Below are positions 10,478 to 57,868 of a DNA stretch of 64,000 bases, one piece after another. The stretch's first letter is position 1. Every line of letters begins with the position of its first letter. Source of the DNA: Perkinsus chesapeaki ATCC PRA-425 (taxonomy: Eukaryota > Protista > Perkinsozoa); NCBI GenBank assembly GCA_013115145.1, contig JAAPAO010000100.1:1-64000 (forward strand). Direction: 5' to 3'. The position numbers and the translations under genes are program-made. Below the pieces are notes generated by a model that searched no databases, was not told where the DNA came from, and was given only the letters and a program-made list of their open reading frames with translations.

Positions 10478-11776
10478 TTATAGCGAACGTGACTGGAAGT
10501 AAAGCTTCAAGCAGGCAGTAGCTCCGAGCAGGGAACCCACAGCAGCGGAGAGGAACGGCGCCGCTGAAGCTAGATAGTATAATGGGCCCGCTGCGCCGGT
10601 TCCTAATAGCCTACCGATGCCTTGAGAAAATGACATATAACCCATTAGCTCCCCTCTCCTAGTCACTGGAGCCAATGCTGCCACTATACCAGGCATGGCA
10701 CTGTAGATGGATGACGTAGTCACGCCTAGTAGGACCCATTTGATACAGAGGAAGGGCCACGGATACGCAAATAAGATGGGGAGGAGGAGGCTGGTCAAAC
10801 CGTACACCGTCATGGAAGCGGCGACGATAGCACTTGGTTGACGGCCACCGTGATTGCTTAGCCAGACGAACAGATACGAACCGAGAATGATCATCGATCC
10901 ATCACCAAGGTAAGTTGCTCCGGCTACCACAGGGCTCATGCTGAAGCTGTCCTTAAGGACCAAAGGCGTAGCTACACTAACAACAGAGTTGGTGAAACCA
11001 GACATCATTGCGGTAAAGTAAAGAAAGAAGAAAGCACACCATGGAATTGCCTTTGAAGCCTGGGCAGCGCCCTCAAGCAGAGGAGACTTCTGATCCGCTG
11101 TAGTGGAATGGAATCGAATAGACTCGGGAAGGCCAACGTAGATGAGCATCGTCACAGCCGCTGCCACACCGGCAGTGAAATAAAAGGGAGCTCTCAAACC
11201 GAAGTAAGAGAGGAGCCCACCGATGCCAGGGCCTACAGCCATACACAAACCCGGTATCATGTTCATATACCCTAGATAGGCTCTTTGTCGGCTCTGAACA
11301 CTCACAGTGTCGGCCACGTAGGCCATGGCCACAGGACGACCACCGCCGGCTAGACCGTTGAGAATGCGTAATGCGACGAACCACCAGAAGCCCTGAGTGA
11401 CAGCCTGGAGCGCATAGGCAACTGTGATGATGGCCGTCGATACCAAAAGTAGTGGTCGACGACCGAACCTGTCCGACAAGCGGCCCATCATGGCTGGGGA
11501 GAAGGTCATCCCTATCGCATAGGAGAGCATGCATGTAGAGTAAGCCACACCTGGAGATAATTTACCACAGCCTTGGAGTGATGACGGTGATGAAGGGTCT
11601 ACTAGGATTGGTATTATATTAAGGGCTAATGTCATACCCAGGTGGTCAATAAGGACCACCACACACACCAAGCTTATCCTGAACCGTTCTTTATAGGATG
11701 GTGACGATACAGTCGATGGAGAAAACATCATCGATGAAAACGAACTATATAAAGGGATACACCACAACAATAACAC
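10478..11776 (-). CDS. MFS transporter, DHA1/TetA-like, intronless
   Basis: 432-aa ORF with about 12 TM segments, motif A GRLSDRFGRRPLLL and RILNGLAGG. Confidence 0.9.
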   Translation of the reverse strand: MLLLWCIPLYSSFSSMMFSPSTVSSPSYKERFRISLVCVVVLIDHLGMTLALNIIPILVDPSSPSSLQGCGKLSPGVAYSTCMLSYAIGMTFSPAMMGRLSDRFGRRPLLLVSTAIITVAYALQAVTQGFWWFVALRILNGLAGGGRPVAMAYVADTVSVQSRQRAYLGYMNMIPGLCMAVGPGIGGLLSYFGLRAPFYFTAGVAAAVTMLIYVGLPESIRFHSTTADQKSPLLEGAAQASKAIPWCAFFFLYFTAMMSGFTNSVVSVATPLVLKDSFSMSPVVAGATYLGDGSMIILGSYLFVWLSNHGGRQPSAIVAASMTVYGLTSLLLPILFAYPWPFLCIKWVLLGVTTSSIYSAMPGIVAALAPVTRRGELMGYMSFSQGIGRLLGTGAAGPLYYLASAAPFLSAAVGSLLGATACLKLYFQSRSL

Positions 11777-12138: not shown

Positions 12139-13509
12139 TCATACAGGATTCACATCCGCCGCCACTTTCCTATGCATACGACAATAAAGGCACCAAGAGA
12201 GTAACGTGGAGGCAAGGCAGCCGGCAGCAGTGGCGTAGAAGGGTATCTTAAGGTCAGCATCATAAAGTGGACCGGCTAAAGACGTGCCAATTAACCTGCC
12301 AATGCCTTGAGAGAGAGTCATAAAGCCCATGAGCTCTCCCATTCTGGACTTGGGAGAAAGCTCTGCTACAATATTAGGCAGCCCAGCGTAAAACATTGAC
12401 ATGGTGGTGCTGAGTAGGACCCACTTTATGATAACATATGATACAAGCGACTTGAGTGCAAGTACCATTATACCGGTGCCAATGCCATTGATTAGTATAG
12501 AGAACGTGGTAACTATTGTGCTACTATAGTCGAGAGTGTTGCAGAGGTAGACAAAGAAGTATGTACCGAGAAGTATAAACACGCCATCCCCAAGGTAAGT
12601 GAATCCAGCGCCCATAGGGTCCAACCCGAAGACATCTCGGAATACTAGCGGGGCCACCAAGCCAAAGATCATAGTGCTGATGACGGCCAGACATGATGTC
12701 GAGTACAGTAAGGACGCGGCAACTTGGTCAACTGTGGTAGGCGCTGGCTCGTGGACCAAAGGAGCACGGAGTGTGCCACCAGGGCTTCTCGTGGAGACGT
12801 CAAAAGCCATGCATTCGTGATGTGATTCAGGCAGGTAGAGACAGAGCAGGATAAATGTGACAGCGGCCGCTGCGGCTACTATGAAAAATGGCGCAAACAG
12901 CCCGAGGGACGTGCAAAGGCCGCCAATTGCTGGCCCGGCCCCGATGCACAAACCAGGGATCATGTTGATGTAACCGAGATACGCGGTCCTCCTTTTGGGA
13001 TCGCGAACGGTATCCGTTGCATATGCCATCGCAACAGGGCGACCCCCTCCGGCTAGACCAGTGAGGAGCCGGAAAAATACAAACCACCAGAAGTGCCTGG
13101 TTAAACCCTGGAAAGTGTATGATATAGAGATGCCTAACATAGAGGCAAGAAGTAGAGGTCGACGCCCTAGCCTATCGGACATAAGGCCCATGATAGGCGG
13201 AGATATTGTCATACCAATTGCATGTGCCAATGATGTTAAAGAGTAGGCCTTGCCCAAACCAAGGGACTCGCAACCTGTAAGATGATACTCAGATTTCGGG
13301 TCCACCAGAACCGGTATAATATTCAGGGGTAGTGTCAAACCGACGAAGTCAATGAACACCACGGAGCACACCAGATAGACGCGGAACCGGAGCATGAAGC
13401 TCGATCTCGGCGGCACACCTGCCATGCTACCAGTACCGCTATAACGTTCAGGCATTTGATGATTAAATAAAACTGTGGTATGTCGAGCACAGGCACCCGA
13501 TTGAGGCAC
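12139..13509 (-). CDS. MFS transporter, DHA1/TetA-like, tandem paralog, intronless
   Basis: 456-aa ORF with GLMSDRLGRRPLLL. Shares GLAGGGRPVAMAY and GELMG..SQGIGRL with the neighbouring gene. Confidence 0.9.
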   Translation of the reverse strand: MPQSGACARHTTVLFNHQMPERYSGTGSMAGVPPRSSFMLRFRVYLVCSVVFIDFVGLTLPLNIIPVLVDPKSEYHLTGCESLGLGKAYSLTSLAHAIGMTISPPIMGLMSDRLGRRPLLLASMLGISISYTFQGLTRHFWWFVFFRLLTGLAGGGRPVAMAYATDTVRDPKRRTAYLGYINMIPGLCIGAGPAIGGLCTSLGLFAPFFIVAAAAAVTFILLCLYLPESHHECMAFDVSTRSPGGTLRAPLVHEPAPTTVDQVAASLLYSTSCLAVISTMIFGLVAPLVFRDVFGLDPMGAGFTYLGDGVFILLGTYFFVYLCNTLDYSSTIVTTFSILINGIGTGIMVLALKSLVSYVIIKWVLLSTTMSMFYAGLPNIVAELSPKSRMGELMGFMTLSQGIGRLIGTSLAGPLYDADLKIPFYATAAGCLASTLLSWCLYCRMHRKVAADVNPV

Positions 13510-21530: not shown

Positions 21531-22679
21531 ATGCCTGCTACTTTACAGGAATTGCATGGTGTAATGTCAGACGTACCTCCTACTGCAAGCACACTATCGA
21601 GGAGTGTATCCGATTATACCACCCCTGACATCGAAAACTTACCACAAGTTTCACCGTCCTTATCATTGCGCGAGGGAGACAAGCAATCCACTCCTCCATC
21701 ATATCTTGGCTCGGTGCTATGCCTGATAGGAGTCCTGTTCTTCTCGTTTACACAGCTCTGCGCATACCTGGCCTCGAGCCGTTATTCTGCGTCTGAGATC
21801 ACGCTGGTGCGGTCAGCGATTCAAACGGTGGGAGCGACCCTCTTCGCCTTGGTGATTGGAGTGAATCCTATCGGCCCTTCTGGTCTTCGCTTAATGTGCT
21901 TCATCCGCGGATTCATCGGAGCTTTGGCAAACCTTCTTTTACTGTATGCAGTGGCTCACATGCCCATGGCTGATGCTAATGCCATTTTCTTTACCAACCC
22001 CATCTTCACCACAGTCTACGCTTCCCTCATACTAAAGCAGAGAGTTTCCGTACTGGAACTCTTCGCCCTTTGTATCGGTCTGGTTGGATCACTCCTAGTT
22101 GCTCGCCCTACTTTCATTTTTGCCACGGAGAATGAGACTGTAATTGGTGATCCTGATCCTGGTGTGCTGCTTATAAACATCTTTGGAGCAGCTCTAGCTG
22201 GTGCGGTCCCAGTCATTGTAAGTTTCATTGGTTCATCAGTTCACTACGTCTGCCTTGTATTCTCATTTGGTGCATGTGGTGCGCTTGAGAGTGCTGCAAC
22301 CCTTGGCCTGGGACTAGATACCAGAGACGCACCGGCAGCAGTAGGTAGCTCTACCATGGGCTATGTGTTCCTAGTAGGAACAGGGCTATTCGGCATGCTA
22401 TCCCAATTCTTCTATAACAAGTCGCTTCAATTGGAAAAGCCGCAGAACTGTGCCATACTTTTCCAGACAAATGTAGCATTAACTTTCCTGTGGCAAGCCC
22501 TCGTGAATGTTGACGAGCTCAGTTCGCTGAGTGTCGTCGGATCCCTGCTGATAGTGTGCTCGAGCTCTGCTATCCTCGGTGGGAGGGTAGTTACATCCAG
22601 AAGTGCATCGAGTGTCATGAGCGAACCGAAAGTCGAACGCATAGAGATATCTATAACGGCTTCTCAGCTGAAAGAGTGA
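21531..22679 (+). CDS. EamA/DMT-superfamily transporter (SLC35G-like), intronless
   Basis: About 10 TM segments, RGFIG..LLYAVAHMPMADANAIFFTNPIFT..LILKQRV and KSLQLEK motifs. The true start may be the ATG near 21564, after a pyrimidine-rich CAG. Confidence 0.9.
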   Translation: MPATLQELHGVMSDVPPTASTLSRSVSDYTTPDIENLPQVSPSLSLREGDKQSTPPSYLGSVLCLIGVLFFSFTQLCAYLASSRYSASEITLVRSAIQTVGATLFALVIGVNPIGPSGLRLMCFIRGFIGALANLLLLYAVAHMPMADANAIFFTNPIFTTVYASLILKQRVSVLELFALCIGLVGSLLVARPTFIFATENETVIGDPDPGVLLINIFGAALAGAVPVIVSFIGSSVHYVCLVFSFGACGALESAATLGLGLDTRDAPAAVGSSTMGYVFLVGTGLFGMLSQFFYNKSLQLEKPQNCAILFQTNVALTFLWQALVNVDELSSLSVVGSLLIVCSSSAILGGRVVTSRSASSVMSEPKVERIEISITASQLKE

Positions 22680-23190
22680 TTTGAAGCTCTAATTTGGCCA
22701 CTGTCTGACTGCGGGTAATGAAGAAGCCTATGAATACATGAACCATTTGGGCTGTAATAGTGAAAGAAGTGTAGAGTACAGTTGATACTTAATCATAATA
22801 TTTTATGACTCATATCACCAATTATCATAGTTCTTGGCCCGAAAGCAAACGCTCGCAGTGTAGATCGAACAGAGAGATTCTCGCACGCAAGTGGCATGGA
22901 ACCCAAATGCTTCAGGCTGAAACCTTCAGCGTCACACGACCTCTCGACGTCCTGAGCATGGACAGCGGTCTAGCACAAAAAGAGACTTTACGGAGTTGAG
23001 GAGCAATTCAAAGTCAGATTTTGAACAGGCTACTAACACCATTATACTTTATAGAAAATGTTATCCATTGTAATCGTATAGCTAAACCGAGCATTACAAG
23101 TTGTAATGTCTGGCTGTAATTTACAACTGCATAACGTGTACAGCTGGAAAAATGCGAGGCTTCCGGAGATGCAGGGGCATGACACTGGTC
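22300..23190. repeat. Segmental duplication block A (EamA 3' end plus downstream), copy 1
   Basis: Near-identical to about 31795-33000, except that about 22875-22955 is replaced there by an unrelated stretch of about 390 bp. Confidence 0.9.
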
Positions 23191-24499
23191 AGGGGGCATA
23201 TGCCCTCCTGGTTCTATGCCCTCCTGATTCTACTCAAGCGGTACCGACTGCATCACCAAATTGGTATCCGTGAGGTTGGTTAGCAACCCCTCAGCTCTAC
23301 CGCTTTCATCGAGATGGTCTCTAGCGAAGGAGCTCCGAAAGTTGTATTATCGGTTAGAGGATCATGCTTCACATCCTCTAGTAGAGGACATCTACCTGCA
23401 AGCAGATCCTTTCAAGATGCTGCATCTTAGATGCAACATCGTGCTATTTGCACGGTGCAGGCCTTATGTCATCCTAACGACCCAGCATAACGAGGCTGGT
23501 AAGAACGAGGTCATAAGGAGTTTGGAGCTCTACTCCGAGCATCAGCTATCGAAGACAAGGCCTCAGACCCTCGGTCGCTGAACAACGCTAAGAGATGGAT
23601 CAGTATGGCCGCCATACTATGGCGGCCTTCACTATAAATTGCCTACCGTACCCTGATGCAGATGATCCATCACAAATAACGATTCACTATACCCATAGCC
23701 TATGGAACCCATAGTATGGGCCATATGTATGCTGCAGAGCCCCTAACGGTATGGCGAAAGCCGTACCTTCGGTGATGATGCTAACGCAGTACAATAGGCG
23801 GGAGAGTGGTTAGGGAGCGGACTCCTTATTGAACACCTCCCAGCCGACTTGGCTGTCGTACGCCAAACCTTCTCTGGTGAACGGTCACTCTCACTGCGAG
23901 CACTACAAGATTTCCAAGATGAAGCCACAACCTATGGCTTCATTGAATAGCCTGTGGCCCACAGGATCCGAGATACGGCGCCGCTGATGCCTACTATGAC
24001 GCTGGACGAAGAAGAGGCAGCTGTCGGATCCAGCAGTCTAGGGGAGTGTGCCGAGTGTCGAGATTTTCGTCGAGGAAACAATGATTCTTGATAGTATCAG
24101 GCTGTTACTTTTCATTCAGATGGCAGGTCGGCCAGAGCAGAGTACATTGCAACGGCTTTAATGGCTGGTGTGGCGCAACTCAGTGCTCCCGCACTTGTAC
24201 TACTTTTTAAGGATAGGCGGCATCGAGACCTCTTCTTGAGGTGTCGCAGGAATCCTGCGGCAGGATCCATTAAACCTGGTAGACCGGTCCGCTAAGTATT
24301 GGTATACGTGACGATGGATAATAATAAGATATTCCGGAATTTGATACTTTTGTGCTGTTCTGTCGCCATTCGTGTATGCGTGCAGAATCTGCACTGCAGA
24401 TCACTGTGATACGCCACTAAGATACTTAAGCGCGCTACCGTTTTGTATTACCAGCCTTACAAAGTTAAGTTACAACTTAGTTACGAATTCATTAACCAC

Positions 24500-24580
24500 A
24501 ACCATTGTCAATGGTTAATTTTACAAATTCAATGGTCCATTGAATTTGTAAAAATTAAGAACACAACTTGTGTTCTTAAT
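24500..24580. repeat. Chain of three perfect inverted repeats, each with a 1-nt spacer
   Basis: 24500-24516 (8+1+8), 24519-24553 (17+1+17) and 24554-24580 (13+1+13), checked base by base. Confidence 0.95.
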
Positions 24581-24645
24581 CTTGGCACACTGAACCGTCA
24601 TTCGCTCACAGGATTACAATCATATCTTATATTAATCCACATTTA

Positions 24646-25092
24646 ATGATTTGCTGCTACGCACATGTAACTCATTTTCTTCTGGTGATACTAGTAGTAT
24701 CGCTCATAAATGTGATGGGTAACACAACTTATGGTGCGCTTTGGGACAATCGAGGCACTGGTCCGAGCTTCACAGTTTTGGTTCGCGATGATGGTGACGT
24801 TCATATGTTCATGTCGAATGGACCTTGTTATGTGAGGGCTCAGGGTCACTCTGGGAGCAGATTCTTTATACGTTGGAAAAGTACTCAAGACAGACTTAAT
24901 GCCATTAAGGAGTTGAACGACAGGCATATACTCGGATTTGTCATCCATCAAGATGGCTTAACTATGATCGATTTCTGCTGTGATCACTGTTGCCAGCTAG
25001 ATCTAGGCGGTAGATTTTTCCTGGAAGCCTACAGACTCTTCGACCATGCTACTGCCGCTGAAATGTACAACAATATGACGTGCAGAGAGTAG
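24646..25092 (+). CDS. Small secreted hypothetical protein (148 aa), copy 1
   Basis: Signal-peptide-like HFLLVILVVSLINVMG. The ORF is intact in both duplicates. Confidence 0.55.
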   Translation: MICCYAHVTHFLLVILVVSLINVMGNTTYGALWDNRGTGPSFTVLVRDDGDVHMFMSNGPCYVRAQGHSGSRFFIRWKSTQDRLNAIKELNDRHILGFVIHQDGLTMIDFCCDHCCQLDLGGRFFLEAYRLFDHATAAEMYNNMTCRE

Positions 25093-25700
25093 CTCTTGTG
25101 CAGAATAGTCGTGCAGGAATGCCTTGTCCATTTTTCTCGACTCCGTTAGGCAGTATTTTTCTACAATATGAAAAGCTTCTTTCACATTCACCCATAGAGG
25201 CACTGATCGAGCGTCTTGTGTTAGTCACTGTGAGCGATAGCGAGCGAAACCCACATGCTGTTTGGAAGCAGCTCAGTGGCATCCGATGACCACGGAGCAA
25301 AGCCTCACCGGCCAAGTACAAAGCGACTGGCTCATTACATAGTTTAGCTCATTTCAAAAAATCTATTCTCCTTGCACGGAGTTTTGCACTTTAGTGAGCA
25401 TGCCATAAGCCTTGTTATAGGAGGTGGAATATTGCAGCGTGAACGCGTCAGCGGACCTTCAGCACCGGAGGAGGCCGACCGCCGGGATCGAATTACGTCA
25501 CCAAAATCAAAACACAAAAGCTCGGGTTCAAAGAAGGAACATAACTGACTTTAGACAGATGGAACCACATGTGATTCATGAAGTTGAGAGCCCATCGCCG
25601 ATGAGTCGCTGCAATCGTCTTATTTCTGATAACAGGACGTTCTCGTCTAGGCTGGAAATGAGTAATCGTAGTAACCTATGTGAAGTGACCTTCTACAGCA

Positions 25701-26058
25701 CTAGCGTACTTTTAGGCAGTACTTGTCGGATACAGCTTTCAGTTGTGTAGGATCGTTGATATCCACCACTGTAGCATTGCAGAAGTCGAACATCGGCATA
25801 TCTCGGTTCGCACCGAAAGCTCCCCCAACGCTTGTTCGATAGGAAAGGCGGGGAGAAGCCCCTCGGCATGCGCTACCACTGGAGTCGGCATCCCTGAACG
25901 ATATTTCGGAAATTATATTTAACCCTCTCGTGGCTACCTACTGTGCGGCACAGCTCTACGCCATAGCCGCAGGGCACTATTGACTTCCCTGAGTTCACTT
26001 TGAGCTTCGCCTCTCCATTAGCGTTTGGTGTACCGTCGAGAGTGATGTTACGAGCACT
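25701..26058 (-). pseudogene. Duplicated last two exons of MSH4
   Basis: Matches 35525-35883. A 1-nt deletion (AGGAAAGGCG at 25841 vs AGGAAATGGCG around 35671) shifts the frame, and upstream exons are absent. Confidence 0.85.
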
Positions 26059-28400: not shown

Positions 28401-31400
28401 GCGCCGACTGTTCCCGTGGGTATATCGTATACGAACAGCCTTTGTCGGTCGCAAACTGGAAAGAAAGTAGAATGCGCCGCTAGTGCGACGAACTTGGTGG
28501 TCTAGTTGGCAACAAAAATTTGATTGCAAGATTCTATATTAGAACCCTAACACTGCCGCTGGTTTTCTCAAGAGAAAAGGCGTGAAAACTTGACCTACTT
28601 CCGGGAGACAGACGTGAAGGTTCCACGGTGGAGATTGTTAATATACCAGAGGGTGACCCGAAGATCATCCACCACTTTTGTTATGTTCTGAGACATAGGC
28701 CCCAACAAGGAAGAGTAGCGTCTCATATGTAAAAATATCTCCGAGGTTTCGACCATACCACAGAGTTTGTCTCTGCTCTCCATTGGTGGAGCCGGAAGAC
28801 ATTCTACACCATATACAACACAGTACCATGGGCAGACTGCGAACATTTCTCCAGATGAAGGGTAAAGCTCATAAACGGTTATAGTTGTGATGGAAGTCGT
28901 ACACAGTCGGACTGATACTACGACAGTTTCAATTCGTGTCCCTCCACGTGGCACATTGTCTGCCACATACATTATAATATAAGCATACAATATGAGCATC
29001 ATCTGTCTCGGATAACATCGGAGTCTGACTAAGGCCATCACGAGCGCGTATAAGGACTTGGTAAATACGGAATTTCAGCGAGCCGAGAGATCGGAAGACC
29101 GGAATTTTCGTCATCGAATTCTCAACACGTGCCTCTGGAGCCACTCGGGAGTAGCTCCCTCAAACGAGAGTTTTATAGGAAAACACAAGCTCTCATCGGA
29201 TCTCGTGAGGTTCCGTTGCCGAAGCAACTCACCGAACCCCTAGGACATGTGCTCATAATATATATGGGAGAGGTATGTGGTCTGGAATTCATTGAGGGTT
29301 TTCGAATACAAAACATCGAAAAGCCGATGAGGCGCCATAGTTTGAAAGGATCCTAGCCCTTGTACCAGAGTGACAAGATGGAATCACTCAACGGCAAGAC
29401 TGTGTTGTTGGAATTCACTTGATTGAACAACCTGCGCAGCTACTCGTATTCGGATAGCACAAGTTTGCAGGCTCTCGCTATATAGCCGAAGTTGCAAAGT
29501 CTATACTCCCCGCGATCACTTGAATACATCCTGATGTAACTCGGTGCTGTACTCGGTTTTATAAGCATCGTGGGAAGCTGAGCCTCTAAGTCTCATATTT
29601 AGAAGTCGCTTAAGTACCCAAGAGTCTTGGGTAGGGTCTTGGGCCAAGACCCCGGCAACTTAACGCCGCTTCTACAAACCGAAAGACTTTAACAAGATGC
29701 CTGCACGAGAATTAGGACTAATCATAATGATGAATCATAACTAACGATCAACGGAACCACTCAAACGGAGCCTCCTACGGAGCTCTTGGTGAGGAATTTG
29801 CCGATAATCCCTGGCGCTCTGTCCAACTACGTCAGACCCATTTGGCGAGTCGCCAAGGGCGACCCGTTAACGTTCGACCGATGCGTACCCATAATTGACA
29901 ACACTTCACTGTTAGAGCATAGATGTTAAAATCCCGACGCTAGTAGCTTGAACTACTGCGATTGTATAGGAATATCCTCTGATGAAAAGGCTTCCACTGC
30001 AACAAAGACTTGGTTTTATCTTGGATTCACTTGGCATACCAAACGCAGTCAATGGTGAGGCTCCCATCAAGAACGCAATGCATGCCTGTTGGACATTTCT
30101 TGAAATACTGAAAAATGACATGCTTTCGAAATGATTATACTATGGGAAATCTTACCGCACAGCCTAAACGACAGTAACCATCTTTATCACAATATTGGTT
30201 GGCATTGCCGTTGGGTGGTCCCGGACAATCAGAATTGTGTGAACATGTTACACTGCAGAAGCATACGAGTCTAGTGTCCCCTGCGTCGCATACTGGATAC
30301 CAGCCGGGCTCACAACTACAACCGCTGGTGCTACAGTGACCAACTGGCTCCGCATAAGGAACTGATTAAGAAAACTGGCTTACATGGATTCGCTGAATAC
30401 AGAATTCTTGCGATTTTCGGGGACAGTTCTCCATACCTGTGGGCGGCTGAGTCGTGGCGGTCATATTGGTACCTCCGGGCCCCTCGTCGGAGTTCATCCT
30501 GATCCAGAAGATACTTCGAGTCCTTCAAACAGCCATACTACTTTTGCGTATGGATTTCTTCCAAACTACTGCCGAAGCTTCCTAGAATGCTGATGATGAG
30601 AATGATTCTCATATTATACGACATACTAGTATAGCAGCCGACATGAATGTATACGACCGAGCAAGATAATTAGATAATAGTCAATTATTGATCATTACTG
30701 ACAGCCAATCTCACTGACTAGAACGATCAAAAGGTAACAAGGTTACACACTGTCGCTGACACTGCAGCTGCCCGAATAACAGCGTGATGCTACGATGACA
30801 ATCCTAGATTGGAGATGCTGAATTTGGAATAACTTGCAAGTGAGTACACGGAAAGAATGCAGAAGGGGCTTTAGCTCACCGATCGCCTTTGTGACTTCGG
30901 AGATGTCACAGACTGAAGCGTGCACATCGTGCAGTACATTTAGTGGTGGCGTTGTCCTGGGTTCAGAGTGCCTACAAACTTACCAGGTCAGTTACAAACA
31001 ATGAAGCCTGCAAGTTTACCCAGCATGGTCATCTTAGAACATCGCCTCTGGGTGAAGTCAATGAAAGAGTTTGCACTTGGTGATACAGTATTAAGTGAGT
31101 CAGGCCGCGACTGCTGCGGTTAGAGCACCTGATACTAAGGTGGGGTTCGCAGCAGTTGGGCCAAAACTTGACCGCTAGTCAAGAACCAACTTAACAACAA
31201 TAAAACATATGATAACGCGTATATACCCAGGGTGGTCCTTGCGCTGCCCTTCCGGCAACTCCAAAGTACGATAATAGAAGTGTAGTTTTTCTTTTAACTT
31301 GGGAGAGTGACAGAGAGAGGGTCAGCTTCATAACAATGATTAATAATAGAAATGTCACTAAAGGCGCTAAAGTACACGAAGATGGCTTGCATTTCTGTGC

Positions 31401-31794: not shown

Positions 31795-32174
31795 CGCCAT
31801 AACAGCCTTAGGCCTGGAACTAGGTATCCTCGCCGTACCCGTAGCAGTAGGTAGCTCTACCATGGGCTATGTGTTCCTAGTAGGAACAGGGCTATCCCAA
31901 TTCTTCTATAACAAGTCGCTTCAGTTGGAAAAGCCGCAGAAACTGTGCCTTACTTTTCCAGACAAATGTAGCATTAACTTTCCTGTGGCAAGCCCTCGTG
32001 AATGTTGACGAGCTCAGTTCGCTGAGTGTCGTCGGATCCCTGCTGATAGTGTGCTCGAGGTCTGCTATCCTCGGTGGGAGGGTAGCTACGTCCAGAAGTG
32101 CATCCAGTGTCATGAGCGAACCGAAAGTCGAGCGCATAGAGATATCTGTAACGGCTTCTCAGCTGAAAGAGTGA
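31795..32174 (+). pseudogene. 5'-truncated, frameshifted copy of the EamA/DMT transporter 3' end
   Basis: Matches about 22300-22679, with a 12-nt deletion in GCTATTCGGCATGCTATCCC and single-base indels near CAGAAACTGTGCCTTAC. Confidence 0.9.
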
Positions 32175-34295
32175 TTTGAAGCTCGAATTTGGCCACTGTC
32201 TGACTGCGGGTAATGAAGAAGCCTGTGAATACATGAACCATTTGGGCTGTAATAGTGAAAGAAGTGTAGAGTACATTTGATACTTAATCATAATATTTTA
32301 TGACTCATATCACCAATTATCATAGTTCTTGGCCCGAAAACAAACGCTCGCAGTGTAGATCGAACAGGGAGAGTCTCACACGCAAGCGGTAGAAGGCACC
32401 TCATAACGGGCGGTTGCACTTTAACTCAACATATGCTTGGCTGAATAAGGAGACCTCTTCTCCCATCATAACTTTTTAAAGGCACTTACAAAATATATCG
32501 CAGATCTTGCCAACCATTTCGTCGAGCATTACTATGATCTTCCTACCGTTAAGGAGTTACTCTCATGAGCTCTCGGGTGTCACATCGCCACAATTTTCAC
32601 CTTGAGATATTATTCGAGGAAGCGCATTTTTCCCGGGACACCCTGTATGATATCAACTTGCCCTATAAAAATCGTCTGGCATAATACGCGAGATGATGCA
32701 GCCTTATCAGTAGCGACTGCCTCATTGCAACATCTATATACATCCTCAAACTGAAAAAGATATAATGGGGAATGCTGAGCATGGAGAGCGGTCTAGCACA
32801 AAAAGAGATTTTACGGAGGTGAGGAGCAATTCAAAGTCAGATTTGGAACAGGCTACTATCAGCATTTTACTTTATAGAAAGTGTTCTCCATGATCGTATA
32901 GCTAAACCGGGCATTACAAGTTGTAATGTCTGGCTGTAATTTACAACTGCATAACGTGTACAGCTGGAAAAATGCGGGGCTTGCGGAGATGCAGCGGCAT
33001 GGGACGGAGCAGGGGGTGGCGCAGAGGTCTATGTACTCACACCGCTCTTACTGATTGCCTTAGACTCTGAGGCTTAGAGTGATTAAGGCAGTTGGAACTC
33101 TTCAGCGCAGCGTAGAAGTTCCCACCGGGAGATAACGAATGAAATGCGAGAGAAGGAAGAGATTGGTTCAGGCTGGAAAGCCTGGGCTGCCTTTGATCTC
33201 GTTCGCCTCGCTTAAGACGGATCTTGTTACCGTAATGTAAGCTTCGTTCAAGCAATATTTCGCACGTTATCGAGGATCAGGCTGCAACTGACATGTTTAC
33301 TACTAAAACATGTATTACGTGTGAGAAGTAGGCTTTTATGTGACCCTTGGCTGGGCCAAAGAGCCCAATAGAAGCTTAGCCATCAAGTCTCTTCCATTAC
33401 AGATTATTCTGGATATGCTCTCTGTTAGATATTCGTGGTTTCATACGAGACATTATGAGTTCAGTAGCATACTCGTGGCCCCCCCGGTGTGAGGCAGTGC
33501 TCTGATATCGTCACATTCTACGGGCTTTTGATCGCACTTCCATAACAACAAACGCCACCAATTGGAATGCCGCAGACGTATTTCATTACCATTAAATGTA
33601 AGCTGCGTTCAGGCGACATAGTCATGTTCAGTGAACATTGCTCACATATGGTACGTTGTCTTACATAACTTATGTAGCGAATAGTTGTGTTCACCCATGG
33701 TACGCTATGTTACATAACTTATGTAGCGATTCACAGTTGAGTTCCTGGTCCAGGACAGTGGAGTTCCGGCAAGCTGTGGAGCATCCTGATGAGATCAGTA
33801 TGGACTTCTAGAAGGTTTAGTTCAACCATCTGTGGGGTAACAGCTAGACTTGGGTACGGATTGGAGCAAGTCATATTAGTTTGCGGGAGCACGTCGCGAG
33901 AAGACAAGGAGCAGTGGTGCGCCATATGAGTTTCGCGTAACTCAGGTGTCGCATGGCGAATTCCATAACCAAACCCTGTAACGTCACCTGGACTGCGCTC
34001 CTCCACATAATGGTTTCTGTCTACACTATGTATATCTGTTTGGGGTTCGTACCGGAGCCACCCCAATTAGCTAAAGGTCTTTTCGTTCTCTTCCTGCAAC
34101 TATGCTTATCTCTCGAGTCGAGAGTCTCGACTATCTGAATATCCCTCAGATAGTACTGCTCTCTATGGCTTGAGTAACCAACTTCTCAACCCCCAGTTGT
34201 GTAGTTGAACTTTATTAGCTCCGTACTATAATTCCGCTAGTGAAGTGTTATTCGCTCACAGGATTACAATCATATCTTATATTGATCCACATTTA

Positions 34296-34742
34296 ATGAT
34301 TTGCTGCTACGCGCATGTAACTCATTTTCTTCTGGTGATACTAGCAGTATCTCTCATGAATGTGATGTGTAACACAACTTATGGTGCGCTTTGGGACAAT
34401 CGAGGCACTGGTCCGAGCTTCACAGTTTTGGTTCGCGATGATGGTGACGTTCATATGTTCATGTCGGATGGACCTTGTTATGTGAGGGCTCAGGGTCACT
34501 CTGGGAGCAGATTCTTTATACGTTGGAAAAGTCCTCAAGACAGACTTAATGCCATTAAGGAGTTGAACGACAGGCATATACTCGGCTTTGTCATCCATCA
34601 AGATGGCTTAACTATGATCGATTTCTACTGTGATCACTGTTGCCGGCTAGATTTAGGTGGTAGATATTTCCTGGAAGCCTACAGACTCTTCGACCATGCT
34701 ACTGCCGCTGAAATGTACAACAATATGACGTGCAGAGAGTAG
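34296..34742 (+). CDS. Small secreted hypothetical protein (148 aa), copy 2
   Basis: Same length as 24646-25092. By eye, 13 substitutions (8 non-synonymous, 5 synonymous). Confidence 0.55.
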   Translation: MICCYAHVTHFLLVILAVSLMNVMCNTTYGALWDNRGTGPSFTVLVRDDGDVHMFMSDGPCYVRAQGHSGSRFFIRWKSPQDRLNAIKELNDRHILGFVIHQDGLTMIDFYCDHCCRLDLGGRYFLEAYRLFDHATAAEMYNNMTCRE

Positions 34743-35151
34743 CTCTTGTGCAGAATAGTCGTGCAGGAATGCCTTGTCCATTTTTCTCGACTCCATTAGG
34801 CAATATTTTTCTACAATATGAAAAGCTTCTCTCACATTCACCCATAGAAGCACTGATCGAGCGTCTTGTGTTAGTCACTGTGAGCGATAGCGAGCGAAAC
34901 TCACATACTGTTTGGAAGCAGCTCAGTGGCAACCGATGACCACGGAGCAAAGCCTCACCGGCCAAGTACAAAGCGACTGGCTCATTACATAGTTTAGCTC
35001 ATTTCAAAAAATCTAATCTCCTTGCACGGAGTTTTGCACTTTAGTGAGCATGCCATAAGCCTTATTATAGGAGGTGAAATATTGCAGTGTGAACGCGTCA
35101 GCGGACCTTCAGCACCGGAGGAGGCCGACCGCCGGGATCGGATTACGTCAC

Positions 35152-35317
35152 TGTCGTGTGAATTGTGTCATCTTGTCACTTTTGTGTGCTAAGCTCTGTC
35201 TCCCTAGCTCACGCTTCTCAATATATACTGTAAAGTTGTATTGAAGCTTTTATATATTTTAAATGACTTCTGATAACCTTGCGTTAACTCAGGGAACGGC
35301 TACTAGCAGCTCTAACA
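35152..35317. mobile_element. Probable solo LTR (166 bp) with 5-bp target-site duplication
   Basis: Starts TGT and ends ACA, flanked by GTCAC at 35147-35151 and 35318-35322. The paralogous site near 25497-25501 has a single GTCAC and no insert. Confidence 0.85.
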
Positions 35318-35524
35318 GTCACCAAAATCAAAACACAAAAGCTCGGGTTCAAAGAAGGAACATAACTGACATTAGACAGATGGAACCACATGTGATTCAT
35401 GAAGTTGAGAGCCCATCGCCGATGAGTCGCTGCAATCGTCTTATTTCTGATAACAAGACGTTCTCGTCTAGGCTTGATGAAATGAGTAATCGTAGTAACC
35501 TATGTGAAGTGACCTTCTACAGCA

Positions 35525-38500
35525 CTAGCGTACTTTTAGGCAGTACTTGTCGGATACAGCTTTCAGTTGTGTAGGATCGTTAATATCCACCACTGTAGCA
35601 TTGAAGAAGTCGAACATCGGCATATCTCGGTTCGCACCGAAAGCTCCCCCAACGCTTGTTCGATAGGAAATGGCGGGGAGAAGCCCCTCGGCATGCGCTA
35701 CCACTGGAGTCGGCATCCCTAAACGATATTTCGGAAATTATATTTAACCCTCTCGTGGCTACCTACTGTGCGGCACAGCTCTACGCCATAGCCGCAGGGC
35801 ACCGTTGACTTCCCTGAGTTCACTTTGAACTTCGCCTCTCCATTAGCGTTTGGTGTACCGTCGAGAGTGATGTTACGAACACTCTCAGGGTACCTGCCGG
35901 AGGCCGTGTCTCGGTGATTGAACAGATTGCTCACATTTTATCTAGTTCGGTGAGATAGTGAAAATGTGTGGATAACAAGACTCTACAGTTGGGAACTCCG
36001 AGGAGAAATTCACAAGTAGCCCAAGAGATGGCCACGCCTAACAAATGCATCACGCAGGGCAGGAGGAACGACGTGTGGTCACCTCCGTCATGAGAGGTGC
36101 CCCTGCCAAGCTCATCCAAAAGGACGAGAGCGTTTGATGAGCTTGCTCCTGCATTCTCAAGCACATCGGACAACTCTGTCATCTCACTGCTGAAGCTCGA
36201 TTGTCCTGTTGTTAAAGATACGTGGTCTGACCATAGCAAAGTCTGATAAGACATCAAGGCTCCCAGACCTTCGCTATCATCGATTCCTCCGCTGCGTAAG
36301 AACAACATTTCGACTACTTGCAGCTTGGCTCGGCTTGCTGGAATGAGACATCCTACCTGAAGCGCAGCCTGGAAGGGAGAGTCCTCCCGAGCGAGAAGCT
36401 CGCATACTTGGGCTAGAACTATGTTGATAGCGAGGGTTGTAAGATAGGTAGATTTGCCCGCGCCGTTAGAGGCAGTGATGACCTGGAGGCGGCCGGAATC
36501 CTCGGCTAGCTTGTAATCATACGGAACAAACTGAAAGGATGGCGGAGCGTCCTTTTTCCCCTTCTGTCGTACCTCTTTTCGCTGAGAGCCAGAGCTTCCT
36601 CCCCCACTAACCGCAGCCATGGCGAAGTTATGGTTATATAAGGCGTACCTGCGGGTCACAGCAGATAGGAGTTAGCGAAACACAGCGCACTCTATAAGAG
36701 GATGTCGCGCTCCTTCGATTTCTATGGGCTGCTTCAAGCCGCTGTCAGCAGTTAGGACCGTGGGCACACAAGCTGTACCGCGCGGGATATGAGAAGCCGA
36801 TGGTGGCGCATACCTACCATTAACTTGAGATGACTGCAAATGTCGAACCCACCCTCCACAGTAGATGCTGGTAAAATTGGCAAAGGAACACATCATATCG
36901 AGGTGATTCACCAAGTGGATGCACGTGTAAAGGTATCCTATTTCTGCTCTAACTTTATCGAGAACCATCAGCTCGAGCACCTGGATAGGAACGAGAATAT
37001 GCAGTTCCTTGTGTATAGCAGTTGGATACCTCTCGGAATCGAGTGAGCAGGGCCGCCTCGATTTCCTTCAGGAGAGTGTTAACTCTGGTAAATAGAGAGC
37101 TTGTGGCGGAGCATCTATCAGTGATGGATGATATCCGTCTGTCTTCTCCAGTGTCCCCCACCTTGTCTTGTTATCCTTCACTTGAGTTAATGCCCCACAG
37201 TCATCCATTGTAGAGCTACCATTAGACCCAACATCACTGCCACGACCAGCGTCCGTGGCTGAGGAGTTGCTCTGGCCAACCCTCGATAGGGTCAATCCTC
37301 TACAGGCTTGTATTACAGCGTTCCTAATGTGGATAGAGGAAGTGACACCAGGAGCCTACCAAACCACAGTTTACTTATTCTTTTTTGGAAAGCTAATGTG
37401 ATAGCCTTTTTTCTCACTGAATTCCAGACGCACCGCTCCTTCAGGCATACCAACTTTATTCGAGACAACTTCCTGGTAGCTCCTTGCAATATGTTCAACC
37501 TTCACCGTGAGGATTTCGTTATTCTCAGCTACAAGCAGTGTCGAATACCTCCTCCATTCGTTCCCGCCAGGTTGTTCTTGTGATGTCCAGGACAGGGTCA
37601 ACACCACCTCGTATAACTCCAGCAATCTGTGCAACAGCATTGAAGACCCCTCGACTAGCGAGAACTCGGCGTGTTTTAGCTGGCTTTGCCAGAGAGCCTG
37701 TAATTGGTAAATGTGCCGTTTGTTGAGAGAACTAATGTACCATTCCATCCTAACATTTGCTCCACCGCATCTACATCCACAACGGTGTCTATCACCTAGA
37801 AATGTTCGCAAGAAAATAGTTCCGCGTACCACAGTGTACCTCGCATATGCGACCTCGAGCATCGTCGTGCAATGCATATAATGCTTGGTGCAAAGCCATG
37901 AGTTCTGGAGGCTCTTCCGCATCCCCAGAGGCATTCGAACCGGATGTACTAGAATCTAAGAGAACACTCGAAGATCTTCGATCTGGTAACATCCGACCAC
38001 ATATAGGTGTACTACTTGGAGACTTACTGATGTTAGCCGTAAGCTTCTCGGTCGCTCTGTCGATAAGCTTTTCCATCTTGTCGATGAGCTCCATGCACTG
38101 GCGGATGTAAATTGTATTGCGGATGGCAGCTTTTGACCACTCGTCCGTCTTCCTAAACCCCGCGCTTTGATTTAGGCTCTCAGTCAAATACAGTATATGG
38201 GTAATGTAGGATACCTTGCTGGGTCGGTGGCCAAACGGGTCGCAGCTATTTCTAATTCGGATACCGAGGGCAGCACTTGTTGTGTTAGTCCAAAAAATAA
38301 CTCTTCATCTTGAAGTAATATCTTGACCAAACCCTGAGGTTTGGAATACAGTCGCGTCAGAGCACCGTTACGAGTACAAGTAAGAGGCAAAGACGGATGA
38401 AAATCCAGTCATATACAATTTATGTGGCACTGTATTAGGAGGCAAGGTGATTGCGTAGAACAATACGAACGACGTAGCTAGCGTGTGTCTCCAAACGAAT

Positions 38501-52113: not shown

Positions 52114-54390
52114 TGAGACATGTATGATTTGGCATGCTCCCATCATTGACTTTCGTTGACAAATCTAAGACTTGCGTGTCGAGTGATAACGCCGCAGCAC
52201 GATGTACAATCGCGTTATGTACTTGCATGTCACATAGTGATAGTGGGTGTGTAGTAAACACTGTGTACGGTTACCATACTATTGTAAGCTTTCCCGTCTG
52301 GGCTCTACTGAATAGAGTCTACTTGGAAAGCACCCGGCTGTGTGATAGATTCTCCAGAGATACATTTCGTAGAGATAGATTCTCCTCTGGCACCATCTTA
52401 ACTCGAAGCTCAGAAGAATTGGGCATTGATTATTATATAAGTGATAATGTTAATAATATGAGCGGGAGTAAAACAGCTGATAAGATATTTGTAAATGTGT
52501 GCATCTTGTTCGCTTCTTCCGTTCCGTGTATCTACTAGATACTATCTAGGCTAGTGTATCTTGGATCATTGATTCAAGATACACTGGCCTGGATAGTTAC
52601 CAGTCTAGCCTTAGTAACTAGCCTAGTGATTCAGAATCAACCCGATCTTCTAGTTGTTACTGAACCGCACAGGCTGCTGCGGAATCTAACTTGCTTACTT
52701 GTAATTGCCCGCACTTCCCATAACAGGAATCCCATTGTAGCTATTAGCTACTAGCTGAGGGGCGCGCAACTTGCGTGACGCATGTACATATATTAGTTGG
52801 TTGAATAGGTCAATCACAAATATTTCTAGTATGACAGCAGACAATGAAAAAAGCTACTAGACGTACGGTAGTCAAGTAAAGCACACAAGAGAGATACTAG
52901 CGCACGAGATGAACAAACTGCTGAGAGCGATGAATCAATTGAGCGAGCGAGATATTTCATACGATATGTAGCGCGCATACACTACTGTACAGTATTAGTT
53001 ACTCTGTCTCACAGTCTGCTACTAACAGACTGATTTGTGACTAATTCACGGTATTATGTAATTAGGCTAGTATTATCAGCCTATAGGCTACAGCCTATCA
53101 GCCTATTTACTTAGGCTACAGTAATTACTCGCAGTATTATCACAACTAATTATTGGCTACTAGTACATATCCCTCAGTAAATTTTCAATTATGGGGAAGT
53201 CAGCAGTCTCACGAGTCGCAAGATTATAGGTAATCTTGAGTCAAGATTCTTGACCCAAAACCGCTTGGCGAAAAGGCTTATGTGCTCCTTATCGTGCGAA
53301 TATCCACGTGGCCCATTCAGAGTGTGCTTGCCAACGAGTGCAGCTATCTCATGCAGTTTGCACGACACCTCCTGTCCCTTAGACCATGATGTGTACGTAC
53401 CATTGACTGTCCGCAACCTAAAGCGGTGGTTTTTTTCTGTATGGCGTGCGGGGGAGGTCGAGTGCGAGTGCGTTTTGCCCCATGAACCCCTTCAACTGTC
53501 GCGTCCACGAGTGATAGCGGATAAGCCCGCGCGTACGTGTGCTTTCGCCATAGGCATAAATTACGAGGAGGGATGAGGTTCCATACTAAATATGGGCAAG
53601 TCTTGCCCTAGCGGTGTGCTGGCTGATACTCGCTTTCAGCTCGGTGATTGTCGCGCTCCTTGACCGTCGCGCGACAGTTGTTCATCTTGCTGGGGTTGGT
53701 GGGTGCTGCTATTCAATTGCGAGGGGGTCCGCGCACCCCACGTTGTGGGGGCCCCGCCCGGACCCTTCTGAGTTAGGATCGAACCTGCGACCTGCGCGAA
53801 AATTGCGGTATGGCGGATTGCGCCTTCCACCGAGTGTGCCCGGTTTAAACTCTGTATCCGCTTCCCTCATTGGAAAGCAATCCCAGTGAAACACCGGGAA
53901 CGCACAATATCAGTTCCCATAATGGGACCTGGTTCGTGGCGCTTTTCATGCGAATTAGCAGAGTGCGCACGCGTACGGTGCGAGTCGCAATAGAAAATTC
54001 ATTGAAATATTTTATCCGTACTGTTGGTGAGAAGTTAGCTTCACCTACGCTTTATTACTTGTCTCCGATGCCTCGAGCTATTGTACCTTGAAGCTGTATT
54101 GCCCGCCTGCTTATCGTTACTTTGTATAAAGCCTAGAGATTGTATTAGTAATACAGTATTACCAGAGTCGCCCGTTGTCTACCGGCAGTATCAATCACGA
54201 CTATGCCCACAGAATGCATCGCGCAACATTACCCCGTTATTCCAAACATCAGACTCGGACTGTGATTTATCAGTGAAGAGTTAGACTTTCGATTTCTTTC
54301 TGAATAAATAGTCTAAATTGGCGCTAAGATCAGCATTCGCATACAGCCCCTGGAGCGACCTAACGAGCATCTGAGCAGCTTAGCGCGCCC

Positions 54391-54424: not shown

Positions 54425-56755
54425 ATGGTTACGTCTCTTTTTTGGCCGGTTGTTTACGTAGCCTCTGTGATGGAAGCAATTGCGTGTGCGAAACTAGGGT
54501 CTGTTGGAGCTCCTCAGCAGTTGGTTCGCTACTCGCAAGTGAAGGGAAGGCCCTACGTGGTGTCTTACGATTCCCGGGCCTTCCTCATCGATGATAACCG
54601 AACCTTGCTGCTTGGAGGCTCAGTTCACTACCCTAGGCTTGCCCCAGAAGAATGGGGTCCAATATTGAAGAACATGGCTCTTGATGGGTTGAACCATGTC
54701 CAAATTTATGTTTTCTGGAACGTCCATGAGCCAAATCCTCCCAAGTACGATGCAGCCTCTAAGACTTATGCGCATTCCTACGATCTTGGTGGGAGAGCTG
54801 ATTTGGTTAAGTTCATCAAATTGGCGGGCGAGAATGATTTATTTGTTAATGTTCGTATTGGACCTTATGTCTGTGCCGAGTTTACCTTTGGTGGCATCCC
54901 TGTCTGGACCAAGGACATCCCTGGCATGTGTTACAGGTCTATTTGTGGATGGCATTCTGGAGCTCCTGAAACCTGCGAGCCTTGGAAGACTGGTACCACA
55001 GCTGGATGCGATCCCTGGAGGCAGCAGATGGCCGACTTTACTCTCTTCATTGTCGATCTTATCAATAAGAATGACCTTAGTGCTGAGCAAGGTGGCCCTG
55101 TGATTATGGCACAGATCGAAAATGAGTATCATTATCACGAACCTGTTGGAGATGCCTATATCGCGTGGTGTGGCGATTTGGCTACGAATAGCACCTTAAA
55201 TGTCCCTTGGGTTATGTGCAACGGCATGTCTGCTAAAGGCACGCTAAATGTGTGTAATGATGACGACTGCGAAGATTTCGTTGGGTGGCATGACAGCCAA
55301 TGGCCTAATGAACCTCTTGGGTGGACTGAGGACGAAGGCTGGTTCATCACTTGGGACCCCTATTACTATCTAGCAAACTACAATAGACCACCAGAAGAAA
55401 TGGCTTATGTTGTGGCGAAGTGGGTAGCTATTGGTGGTAGTCATCATAACTATTATATGTGGTATGGTGGTAATCATATTGGTCAATGGGGTGCTGCTTC
55501 TCTCACTAACGCTTATGCTCAAGGGGTCAATGTACTTCCAAGCGGTCTTCCTCATGAACCCAAGAAGTCTCATTTGGCAAAACTTCATAAAGTGCTTGGG
55601 GCACTTAACGGAGAACTCATGAGCGTTGTGGATCGTAAGACGATCAAACCTCAAAATCTGACTGGTGGCGTGAAAATCTATCAGTGGACAGATACACTTG
55701 GCTTCTTGCACCGTCCAGCTTGCCAAGGTTATCCGGAGTATATCACCTTCAAGGGGATAAAATACATGATATCATGTCAAGAGGTTCTGATCGTCAATCC
55801 CCAGTCGGGAACGGTTTATTACGCGAGTGCCCAAGTCCCCGCTGGAGGATCCATAGTAAACAATGTTATTGCGACCCTTGATACAGTGAGCTCCGCGCCA
55901 GAGAAGTTCTCAAAGGGTATGGGCATTCGTAACAGCTCCTATCCTATCGATCAGCTCAGTATCACTGGACTAGATACTGACTATGTCTTATACATGACAT
56001 CTTTTATCAGTCCATCCAAAGTTCCTCTAGAATTGGCTATAAAGTCAAGCTGGTCACAGGCTTTCTATATATCAATAGACGGAGGCAGATCCTTCCCCAC
56101 GACATTGCTCAACATCGACAAAGGCAGCTACGAATGGGTCGCGAAAGCAACATTAACAGGAATTGAGGCTGGCCAGCGCTATGCTCTACACATTCTCTCT
56201 GAAAGCCTGGGCATAGAGAATGGCAATGTCGAGTCTGGTCTAGCCTCAATGGAGCCAGCGCTGAATAAAGGTATATTCGGCGACGTAACAGTTGGTGGTA
56301 GGTCGATATATGAAGGCGAATGGACTATGGTTAAAGGTCTCGATGGTGAGGTCTCAAATGGGACCGAACCCTTTGATACAGCAGGTACGGCTGTCGGTGC
56401 CACTAGTGCCAACGTTCCCACATGGTTCTACTCCGAGTTTGACTTGCCTCCGGCTAAACCTTCTGATTGGGGCGTGAGGTCTGTATCTTTGAGGATTCCC
56501 AAGGGGCTCCCTAACAATGCCGGTGGCCATATCTGGTTGAACGGTAAGAATATTGGAAGATGGCGAGCGACCTTCCAGCCGAGGACCGGAGATTATGTCC
56601 AACCCGAGTACAGACTGCCAGCTGATGCTTTATTTATTGGTAAGAACAAGTTGGCCGTCTTTAGCGCCACTGGAGACTGGGTATCATCTGCTATACGACC
56701 AGCAGAGATAATTGAGAGCTTCTACGTTCCGGTTAGGCATGTTAAACATCATTAA
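54425..56755 (+). CDS. Beta-galactosidase (GH35), secreted, intronless, copy 1
   Basis: GSVHYPR, YVFWNVHEP, RIGPYVCAE, AQIENEY (acid/base), WTEDEGWF (nucleophile) and NYYMWYGG motifs, plus a signal-like N-terminus. Confidence 0.93.
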   Translation: MVTSLFWPVVYVASVMEAIACAKLGSVGAPQQLVRYSQVKGRPYVVSYDSRAFLIDDNRTLLLGGSVHYPRLAPEEWGPILKNMALDGLNHVQIYVFWNVHEPNPPKYDAASKTYAHSYDLGGRADLVKFIKLAGENDLFVNVRIGPYVCAEFTFGGIPVWTKDIPGMCYRSICGWHSGAPETCEPWKTGTTAGCDPWRQQMADFTLFIVDLINKNDLSAEQGGPVIMAQIENEYHYHEPVGDAYIAWCGDLATNSTLNVPWVMCNGMSAKGTLNVCNDDDCEDFVGWHDSQWPNEPLGWTEDEGWFITWDPYYYLANYNRPPEEMAYVVAKWVAIGGSHHNYYMWYGGNHIGQWGAASLTNAYAQGVNVLPSGLPHEPKKSHLAKLHKVLGALNGELMSVVDRKTIKPQNLTGGVKIYQWTDTLGFLHRPACQGYPEYITFKGIKYMISCQEVLIVNPQSGTVYYASAQVPAGGSIVNNVIATLDTVSSAPEKFSKGMGIRNSSYPIDQLSITGLDTDYVLYMTSFISPSKVPLELAIKSSWSQAFYISIDGGRSFPTTLLNIDKGSYEWVAKATLTGIEAGQRYALHILSESLGIENGNVESGLASMEPALNKGIFGDVTVGGRSIYEGEWTMVKGLDGEVSNGTEPFDTAGTAVGATSANVPTWFYSEFDLPPAKPSDWGVRSVSLRIPKGLPNNAGGHIWLNGKNIGRWRATFQPRTGDYVQPEYRLPADALFIGKNKLAVFSATGDWVSSAIRPAEIIESFYVPVRHVKHH

Positions 56756-57714: not shown

Positions 57715-57868
57715 CCGCTCTTGGCCAGGAGTACGGCGACTGGCGACAGTGCAGTGGCTGATATAGCTTTTCTATCGAGCAGTGGCTATAGTGCATGCGC
57801 CGGCCTGCTAAGCTCCGGTACCAGTGGTACCGTACCACCATTTACCCTTAAAACGTCCTAGAGTGTCA
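57715..57868 (+). pseudogene. Decayed fragment of the neighbouring glycosyltransferase gene
   Basis: Matches about 51785-51973 (GAGTACGGC.ACTGGCGA; GGCTGATATAGCT..TCGAGCAGTGGCTATAGTGCAT; CCATTTACCCTTA) with an internal deletion and a 14-nt insertion. Confidence 0.85.

Follow-up and report, generated by a model that had tools for sequence, protein, structure and literature searches.

How does a stretch of non-coding DNA come to hold three perfect palindromes laid end to end, each folded about a single base? The question is raised by positions 24500 to 24580 of the window, the whole 64-kb stretch of Perkinsus chesapeaki DNA under analysis (contig C3 of a 41.7-Mb, 3544-contig assembly). This chain is made up of three inverted repeats, all perfect and all located exactly as the original prediction had them: P1 (24500-24516, 8+1+8, centred on the T at 24508), P2 (24519-24553, 17+1+17, centred on the T at 24536) and P3 (24554-24580, 13+1+13, centred on the C at 24567). 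Together they cover 79 of the 81 bases, only the dinucleotide AA at 24517-24518 lying outside any arm. The chain and its surroundings (121 bases) are single-copy in the assembly, barring self-matches of the arms.

The original prediction took the chain for a DNA-repair scar, grown by iterated fold-back or hairpin re-closing at one broken end beside a duplication breakpoint. The analysis presented here retains the scar, built of hairpin-derived palindromes, and replaces its proposed course. With a probability of roughly 0.78, the chain is a compound footprint, left by excision of a hAT-type transposon from a non-coding dispersed repeat, and the three palindromes are best read as the repair scars of a cut-and-paste element of this type that inserted and excised twice at nearly one position.

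The chain lies within a dispersed repeat

The window has a low density of open reading frames, and its genes are of eukaryotic type (GH35 beta-galactosidases, MFS and EamA transporters). Tandem paralogues occur among them, with GH35 beta-galactosidases at 54425-56755 and 59150-61561 (~87% DNA identity) and MFS transporters at 10478-11776 and 12139-13509 (~59%). No tRNA or Rfam matches were found in the window.

The host of the chain is a copy of a dispersed repeat of ~224 bp (24047-24589, plus strand) that starts TGTGCCGAG, ends TTGGCACA and carries short terminal inverted repeats (8 nt, TGTGCC[G/A]A); a nested repeat and scars have added to the length of this copy. The genome contains six other copies (contigs C3215, C2183, C625, C337, C3244 and C1359), all of which diverge directly past TTGGCACA. 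No target duplication can be recognised for the ~224-bp repeat, a pair of copies with 96% identity included. The nested repeat (24112-24339, plus strand) is a second, 5'-truncated dispersed repeat, from a family that matches the genome at more than 20 places, ends in GGATAATAATAAGATTTTC and has a 5' truncation point that varies among copies, as in a retroposed element.

The proximity of the chain to a duplication boundary is real: the prediction of about 12 bp between the end of the chain and duplicated block B is right, homology to the second copy of the block running from 24591. Block B (24591-26058) matches 34241-35883 at ~97% identity, and block A (22297-23196) recurs at 31803-33016. The 1.2-1.4 kb between the two blocks is non-homologous between the copies, being mostly repeat-derived in the first (23236-23913 and 24047-24589) and single-copy in the second. 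The suggested tie between chain and breakpoint does not survive this comparison. The host repeat ends where paralogy starts, at 24590/24591, homology with the second copy beginning 1-2 bases past the repeat terminus; what places the chain near this boundary is simply its position inside the last 90 bp of the host repeat. No mechanistic link between the chain and the duplication breakpoint was found; the breakpoint is the end of the host repeat.

Base-centred palindromes are over-represented

Palindromes folded about a single base are strongly enriched in the window. In the dinucleotide-shuffle control that the original prediction had proposed, 64 spacer-1 palindromes with arms of at least 7 nt were counted, against a mean of 4.5 and a maximum of 10 in 100 dinucleotide-preserving shuffles (~14-fold excess), and the three with arms of at least 13 nt compare with none in all 100 shuffles. 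Spacers of 0, 2 and 4 occur at chance level (7, 4 and 6 palindromes in the window), and even-centred palindromes are thus not over-represented. A second contig of 200 kb holds 68 spacer-1 palindromes against 11 with spacer 0 and 12 with spacer 2. The only contrast used is that of spacer 1 with spacers 0, 2 and 4; an excess at spacers 3 and 5 was discarded as a separate class, consisting mostly of spacer-1 palindromes recounted with shorter arms. Since the same pattern recurs in the second contig, the chain ranks as an extreme case within a class of base-centred palindromes that spans the genome.

Two more long perfect base-centred palindromes, for which no partner was identified, lie at 62003-62031 (14+1+14) and 57956-57976 (10+1+10). 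Elsewhere, at 33639-33729, two tandem 42-nt units (49 bp from start to start, 86% identical) each hold a 6+1+6 base-centred palindrome, ACATAA C TTATGT.

Stereotyped 22-nt scars and an 8-bp geometry

Where base-centred palindromes overlap in pairs, they consist of forward, inverted and forward copies of one site, with centres 7 apart, so that an 8-bp site becomes 22 nt at a gain of 14 nt. This spacing is close to exclusive: 13 pairs in the window (64 kb) have centres 7 apart and none was found at each other spacing from 5 to 15, and contig C2183 (200 kb) has 10 such pairs and 0-1 at each other spacing in that range. A 9-, 10- or 11-bp geometry was not found in the 264 kb sampled, beyond one pair with centres 8 apart.

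The gain of 14 nt was checked on three scars that have unscarred relatives or paralogues. The first, at 24245-24266 (site CGCAGGAT), is an exact +14-nt insertion in the nested repeat and is absent from six relatives of that repeat. The second, at 24380-24401 (site GTGCAGAT), is exactly 14 nt longer than the corresponding sequence in three host-repeat relatives (C2183, C625 and C337) and is common to the C3215 copy, one substitution apart. The third, at 57817-57838, is an exact +14 insertion relative to the paralogous copy at 51900. Other scars are present in both copies of duplicated DNA (22366 and 31872; 23092 and 32912).

The 23 rebuilt sites (13 in the window, 10 in C2183) are biased in composition, with T at position 2 in 12 of 23 (p = 0.005) and A at position 7 in 17 of 23 (p = 2e-6); only two of these canonical scars have neither. 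Hermes, a hAT transposase, targets 8 bp with the preference nTnnnnAn (PMC10368747), and the T2/A7 bias of the rebuilt sites is that same preference. The two sites reconstructed for the chain are less typical, GTTGTGTT having T2 only and ACCATTGA neither base. At least six scars lie within 23400-24600, so that two events no more than 30 bp apart are unsurprising.

A canonical 22-nt scar (centres 52535 and 52542) also occurs within 52528-52604, where it adjoins a long imperfect palindrome centred near 52570, with arms of ~16 nt (15/16 matching) and BLAST self-complementarity of 82% over 71 nt.

Ancestral state of the locus

The relatives of the host repeat reveal what the locus looked like before the chain arose. 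Five other copies read AACCA-CTATAG-TTGTGTTCTTAAT, the 6 nt CTATAG in these relatives standing against 63 nt in the window (24505-24567). From the CTATAG state it follows that the right arm of P3 (24568-24580) is ancestral flank and the left arm new, and from AACCA that the first five bases of the left arm of P1 are ancestral. All five relatives have G immediately 5' of TTGTGTT, where the window has C (24567), so that P3 folds about the complement of the ancestral base, with the same flank after it.

This is the rule described for Ac/Ds, whose footprints contain palindromic insertions centred on the complement of the transposon-adjacent base, with arms of up to 20 nt after excision in yeast (PMC5873905). 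The expectation that hAT excision yields palindromes centred on one base is thus borne out at P3. Taken with the Ac/Ds rule, the change from ancestral G to C identifies P3 as the right-hand hairpin product of an excision at GTTGTGTT. Bases N2-N8 of that site are still present at 24568-24574, inside the right arm of P3. The right copy of this target duplication alone survives, the left half of the footprint being missing.

Each palindrome ends in TTAAT/ATTAA, and a piggyBac-like TTAA target was considered on that account. It was rejected: piggyBac excises precisely and forms its hairpins on the element, and the relatives show TTAAT to be ancestral flank.

A proposed two-event excision model

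P1 and P2 share a site of their own. The 7 nt to the left of the P1 centre, followed by the complement of that centre, read ACCATTGA; the complement of the P2 centre, followed by the 7 nt to its right, reads ACCATTGA as well, an 8/8 match. In coordinates, 24501-24507 are N1-N7 of the target duplication and the T at 24508 is the complement of N8 (A), followed by an 8-nt palindromic extension (24509-24516); on the other side, a 17-nt extension (24519-24535) precedes the T at 24536, the complement of N1 (A), and 24537-24543 are N2-N8. Among 33 nearby base-centred palindrome pairs in the window, a duplication matching 8/8 is rebuilt only by P1-P2 and by the pair centred at 29624 and 29643, the rest matching at 0-5 positions. 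Pairing P2 with P3 as two sides of one footprint was also tried and rejected, the respective sites TCAATGGA and GTTGTGTT being mismatched. The second 8/8 pair, at 29615-29652, consists of two abutting 9+1+9 palindromes (29615-29633 and 29634-29652) that rebuild the perfect 8-bp site CCCAAGAC with no filler, an unmerged two-hairpin footprint of the same type as P1-P2.

Growth at a single broken end finds support in neither part of the chain, P1 and P2 being the two sides of one footprint with a common perfect 8-bp target duplication, and P3 the right side of an earlier one whose ancestral state is visible in the five relatives. Neither arm of P2 is ancestral, which implies that ACCATTGA was itself made by an earlier event, as the junction of old flank and filler.

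The order of events would then be as follows. The first event would have begun with the insertion of an element at the 8-bp site GTTGTGTT; at its later excision, the transposase would have left the flanks capped by hairpins. Opening of the right hairpin on the 3' side, ~14 nt from the tip, followed by fill-in, would give the 13-nt extension at 24554-24566 and put C at 24567 where the ancestral base was G. On the left, the end would have lost its own copy of the site together with CTATA, and would have been joined through a 14-nt filler (24540-24553, plus strand), so that the right arm of P2 (24537-24553) represents, in the model, the flank as the first event left it. In a second event, an element would have inserted at ACCATTGA, spanning the old flank/filler junction, and excised in turn. 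Its hairpins would have been opened ~9 nt and 18-22 nt from their tips and the ends joined end to end through AA, without annealing by their 8-nt complementary parts, to yield P1 and P2. Simulation of the two events on an ancestral-type sequence reproduces window positions 24470-24600 exactly (131 bases), with a net gain of 57 nt.

The inserted bases for which the hairpins leave no account amount to 16 nt, namely the 14-nt filler and the AA. The AA at 24517-24518 may be untemplated, or may belong to a right extension of 21/22 nt that overlaps the left extension by TT, one T having been lost from the T run. The filler is absent from the repeat relatives and was found nowhere else in the genome, a search that gave no donor for it, such as a transposon end. 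Eleven of its bases (24541-24551) match an inverted copy of the left flank at 24481-24491 in 10 of 11 positions (chance ~0.003), and this copy keeps the ancestral A where the flank now reads G; some templated fill-in at joining is therefore possible. The snap-back synthesis of polymerase-theta type that had been proposed for the chain could accordingly apply to at most 11-13 nt of the 14-nt filler, and not to the rest.

Transposase genes and alternative origins

The genome encodes hAT transposases. The hAT dimerisation domain (PF05699) has at least 11 matches above the Pfam cut-off, and open frames 521 and 530 aa long carry it at the C-terminus, one of them matching the Hermes transposase (PDB 6dww, E = 6.5e-5). 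The scars point to no one element: the 264 kb scanned yielded no resident elements with a target-site duplication of 7-9 bp and terminal repeats matching at least 11 of 12 bases, and no terminal inverted repeats were found around three transposase frames within the short flanks readable. As to enzymes that may have opened the hairpins and joined the ends, the genome has one match to the SNM1/Artemis-type DRMBL domain (C245) and one weak match to a Ku domain (C189).

The hairpins could in principle have come from a different transposase that also forms them on the flank, of MULE or Transib-like type, an origin we regard as unlikely. MULE transposase domains are at least as common in this genome as hAT ones (at least 25 matches, with open frames of up to 1368 aa), and the MULE element Muta1 forms flank hairpins and makes 8- or 9-bp duplications (PMC5499845). 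MULE target duplications are usually longer, at 9-11 bp (PMC5499845), yet the 264 kb holds no scar of 9-, 10- or 11-bp geometry and a single pair with centres 8 apart; more than 90% of Muta1 excisions are precise, with repair believed to proceed differently from that of hAT elements (PMC5499845), even-centred palindromes are not enriched, and the nTnnnnAn preference is a hAT trait (PMC10368747).

A course without any transposon appears slightly less probable still. Here a single double-strand break would have passed through several rounds of snap-back or template-switch synthesis (of polymerase-theta type, or by hairpin re-closing at one end). The inverted flank copy in the filler, with its ancestral A, would suit such a course, and the chain does look iterative at first sight. 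Snap-back priming by microhomology, however, needs a loop of several bases, whereas all three palindromes of the chain fold about one base, and spacers of 0, 2 and 4 show no enrichment. Nor does such synthesis predict a fixed geometry, yet only the 8-bp geometry was found in the sampled DNA; and it would leave the complement-centred P3, the perfect 8-bp duplication common to P1 and P2 and the transposase target preference of the rebuilt sites without explanation.

An assembly or sequencing artefact, for instance from fold-back chimeric reads, is very improbable. The locus is single-copy in one fragmented assembly (3544 contigs), but scars of the same type have been inherited by duplicated copies (22366/31872, 23092/32912 and 24380 with C3215), and artefacts would not obey the 8-bp geometry, the complement rule or the target-site preference.

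The nearest downstream open frame (24646-25092, plus strand, 148 aa) starts 66 bp past the end of the chain. Its translation has a hydrophobic N-terminus and is rich in cysteines, with no match in Pfam, and the frame is also open in the paralogous copy (34296-34742). The two copies differ at 8 residues, with 13 nucleotide differences spread evenly over codon positions. Least probable of all is a functional role for the chain as a palindromic promoter element of this gene, for instance a protein-binding site or a cruciform. Its position 66-146 bp upstream of an ATG would fit such a role, but the paralogous promoter and all host-repeat relatives lack the chain, which is unique in the genome and one of many such scars across non-coding DNA. 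For the gene itself, the footprint means ~57 extra bases of strongly hairpin-forming DNA, from 79 bp upstream of the start codon, that the paralogue lacks.

Comparison with known hairpin-based systems

The excision mechanism is known, and the chain is an unusually long, well-preserved example of it in a new setting. The closest likeness is to the P-nucleotide footprints of Ac/Ds (hAT) in plants, S. cerevisiae and C. albicans, which share the complement-centred palindromes and the 8-bp target duplication, and which likewise show deletions and filler at the joint and, in yeast, arms of up to 20 nt (PMC5873905). Unlike those assay products, the scars described here are natural footprints fixed in a protist genome. 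Long openings, of at least 8 nt, seem to be the rule in this genome, because its commonest product is the stereotyped +14 scar, and the chain stacks two footprints. The chemistry of Hermes, with flank hairpins and an 8-bp nTnnnnAn target (PMC10368747), is matched by the 8-bp geometry and the T2/A7 preference of the rebuilt sites. Differences from Hermes also exist, in that the two sites of the chain fit nTnnnnAn poorly and no element has been caught in place.

More distant parallels concern the handling of ends. At V(D)J coding ends, a flank hairpin is likewise opened off-centre, filled in and joined, but the P nucleotides usually span 1-4 nt and there is no single-base offset. Polymerase-theta end joining produces templated insertions, and part of the 14-nt filler may similarly be an inverted copy of flank; the single-base centres, 8-bp geometry and complement rule seen in the chain are not predicted by that pathway.

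Hairpin handling and significance for Perkinsus chesapeaki

The stereotyped scar probably comes from annealing of hairpin-derived tails. Were both hairpins opened on the 3' side at least 8 nt from the tip, the resulting 3' tails would carry complementary copies of the 8-bp duplication; annealing of these tails and trimming of the flaps would give the exact 22-nt scar wherever the nicks had fallen. Where the tails were instead filled in and joined end to end, as may have happened at P1-P2 and at 29615-29652, long palindromes would result. A bolder reading, put at slightly less than an even chance, is that the organism handles transposase hairpins in an unusual way, opening them at least 8 nt from the tip and letting the 3' tails anneal by the 8 nt of the target duplication to form the fixed +14 scar, with long palindromes arising when annealing fails.

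Excision footprints normally span only a few bases and are quickly blurred beyond reading; in Perkinsus chesapeaki they are long, stereotyped and frequent, so that past cut-and-paste activity could be counted and dated directly in the genome of a protist that parasitises clams. For each hairpin, the opening distance and the mode of joining may be read from the sequence. The chain adds to this a complement rule that is verified by repeat relatives and not assumed, since the ancestral state is known from them, together with a target-site logo and a reading as two stacked events from which the exact sequence is recovered. Should the proposed handling of hairpins prove true, the genome would hold a countable, datable record of past hAT excisions, of repeat visits to one spot, and of how hairpins were opened and ends joined.
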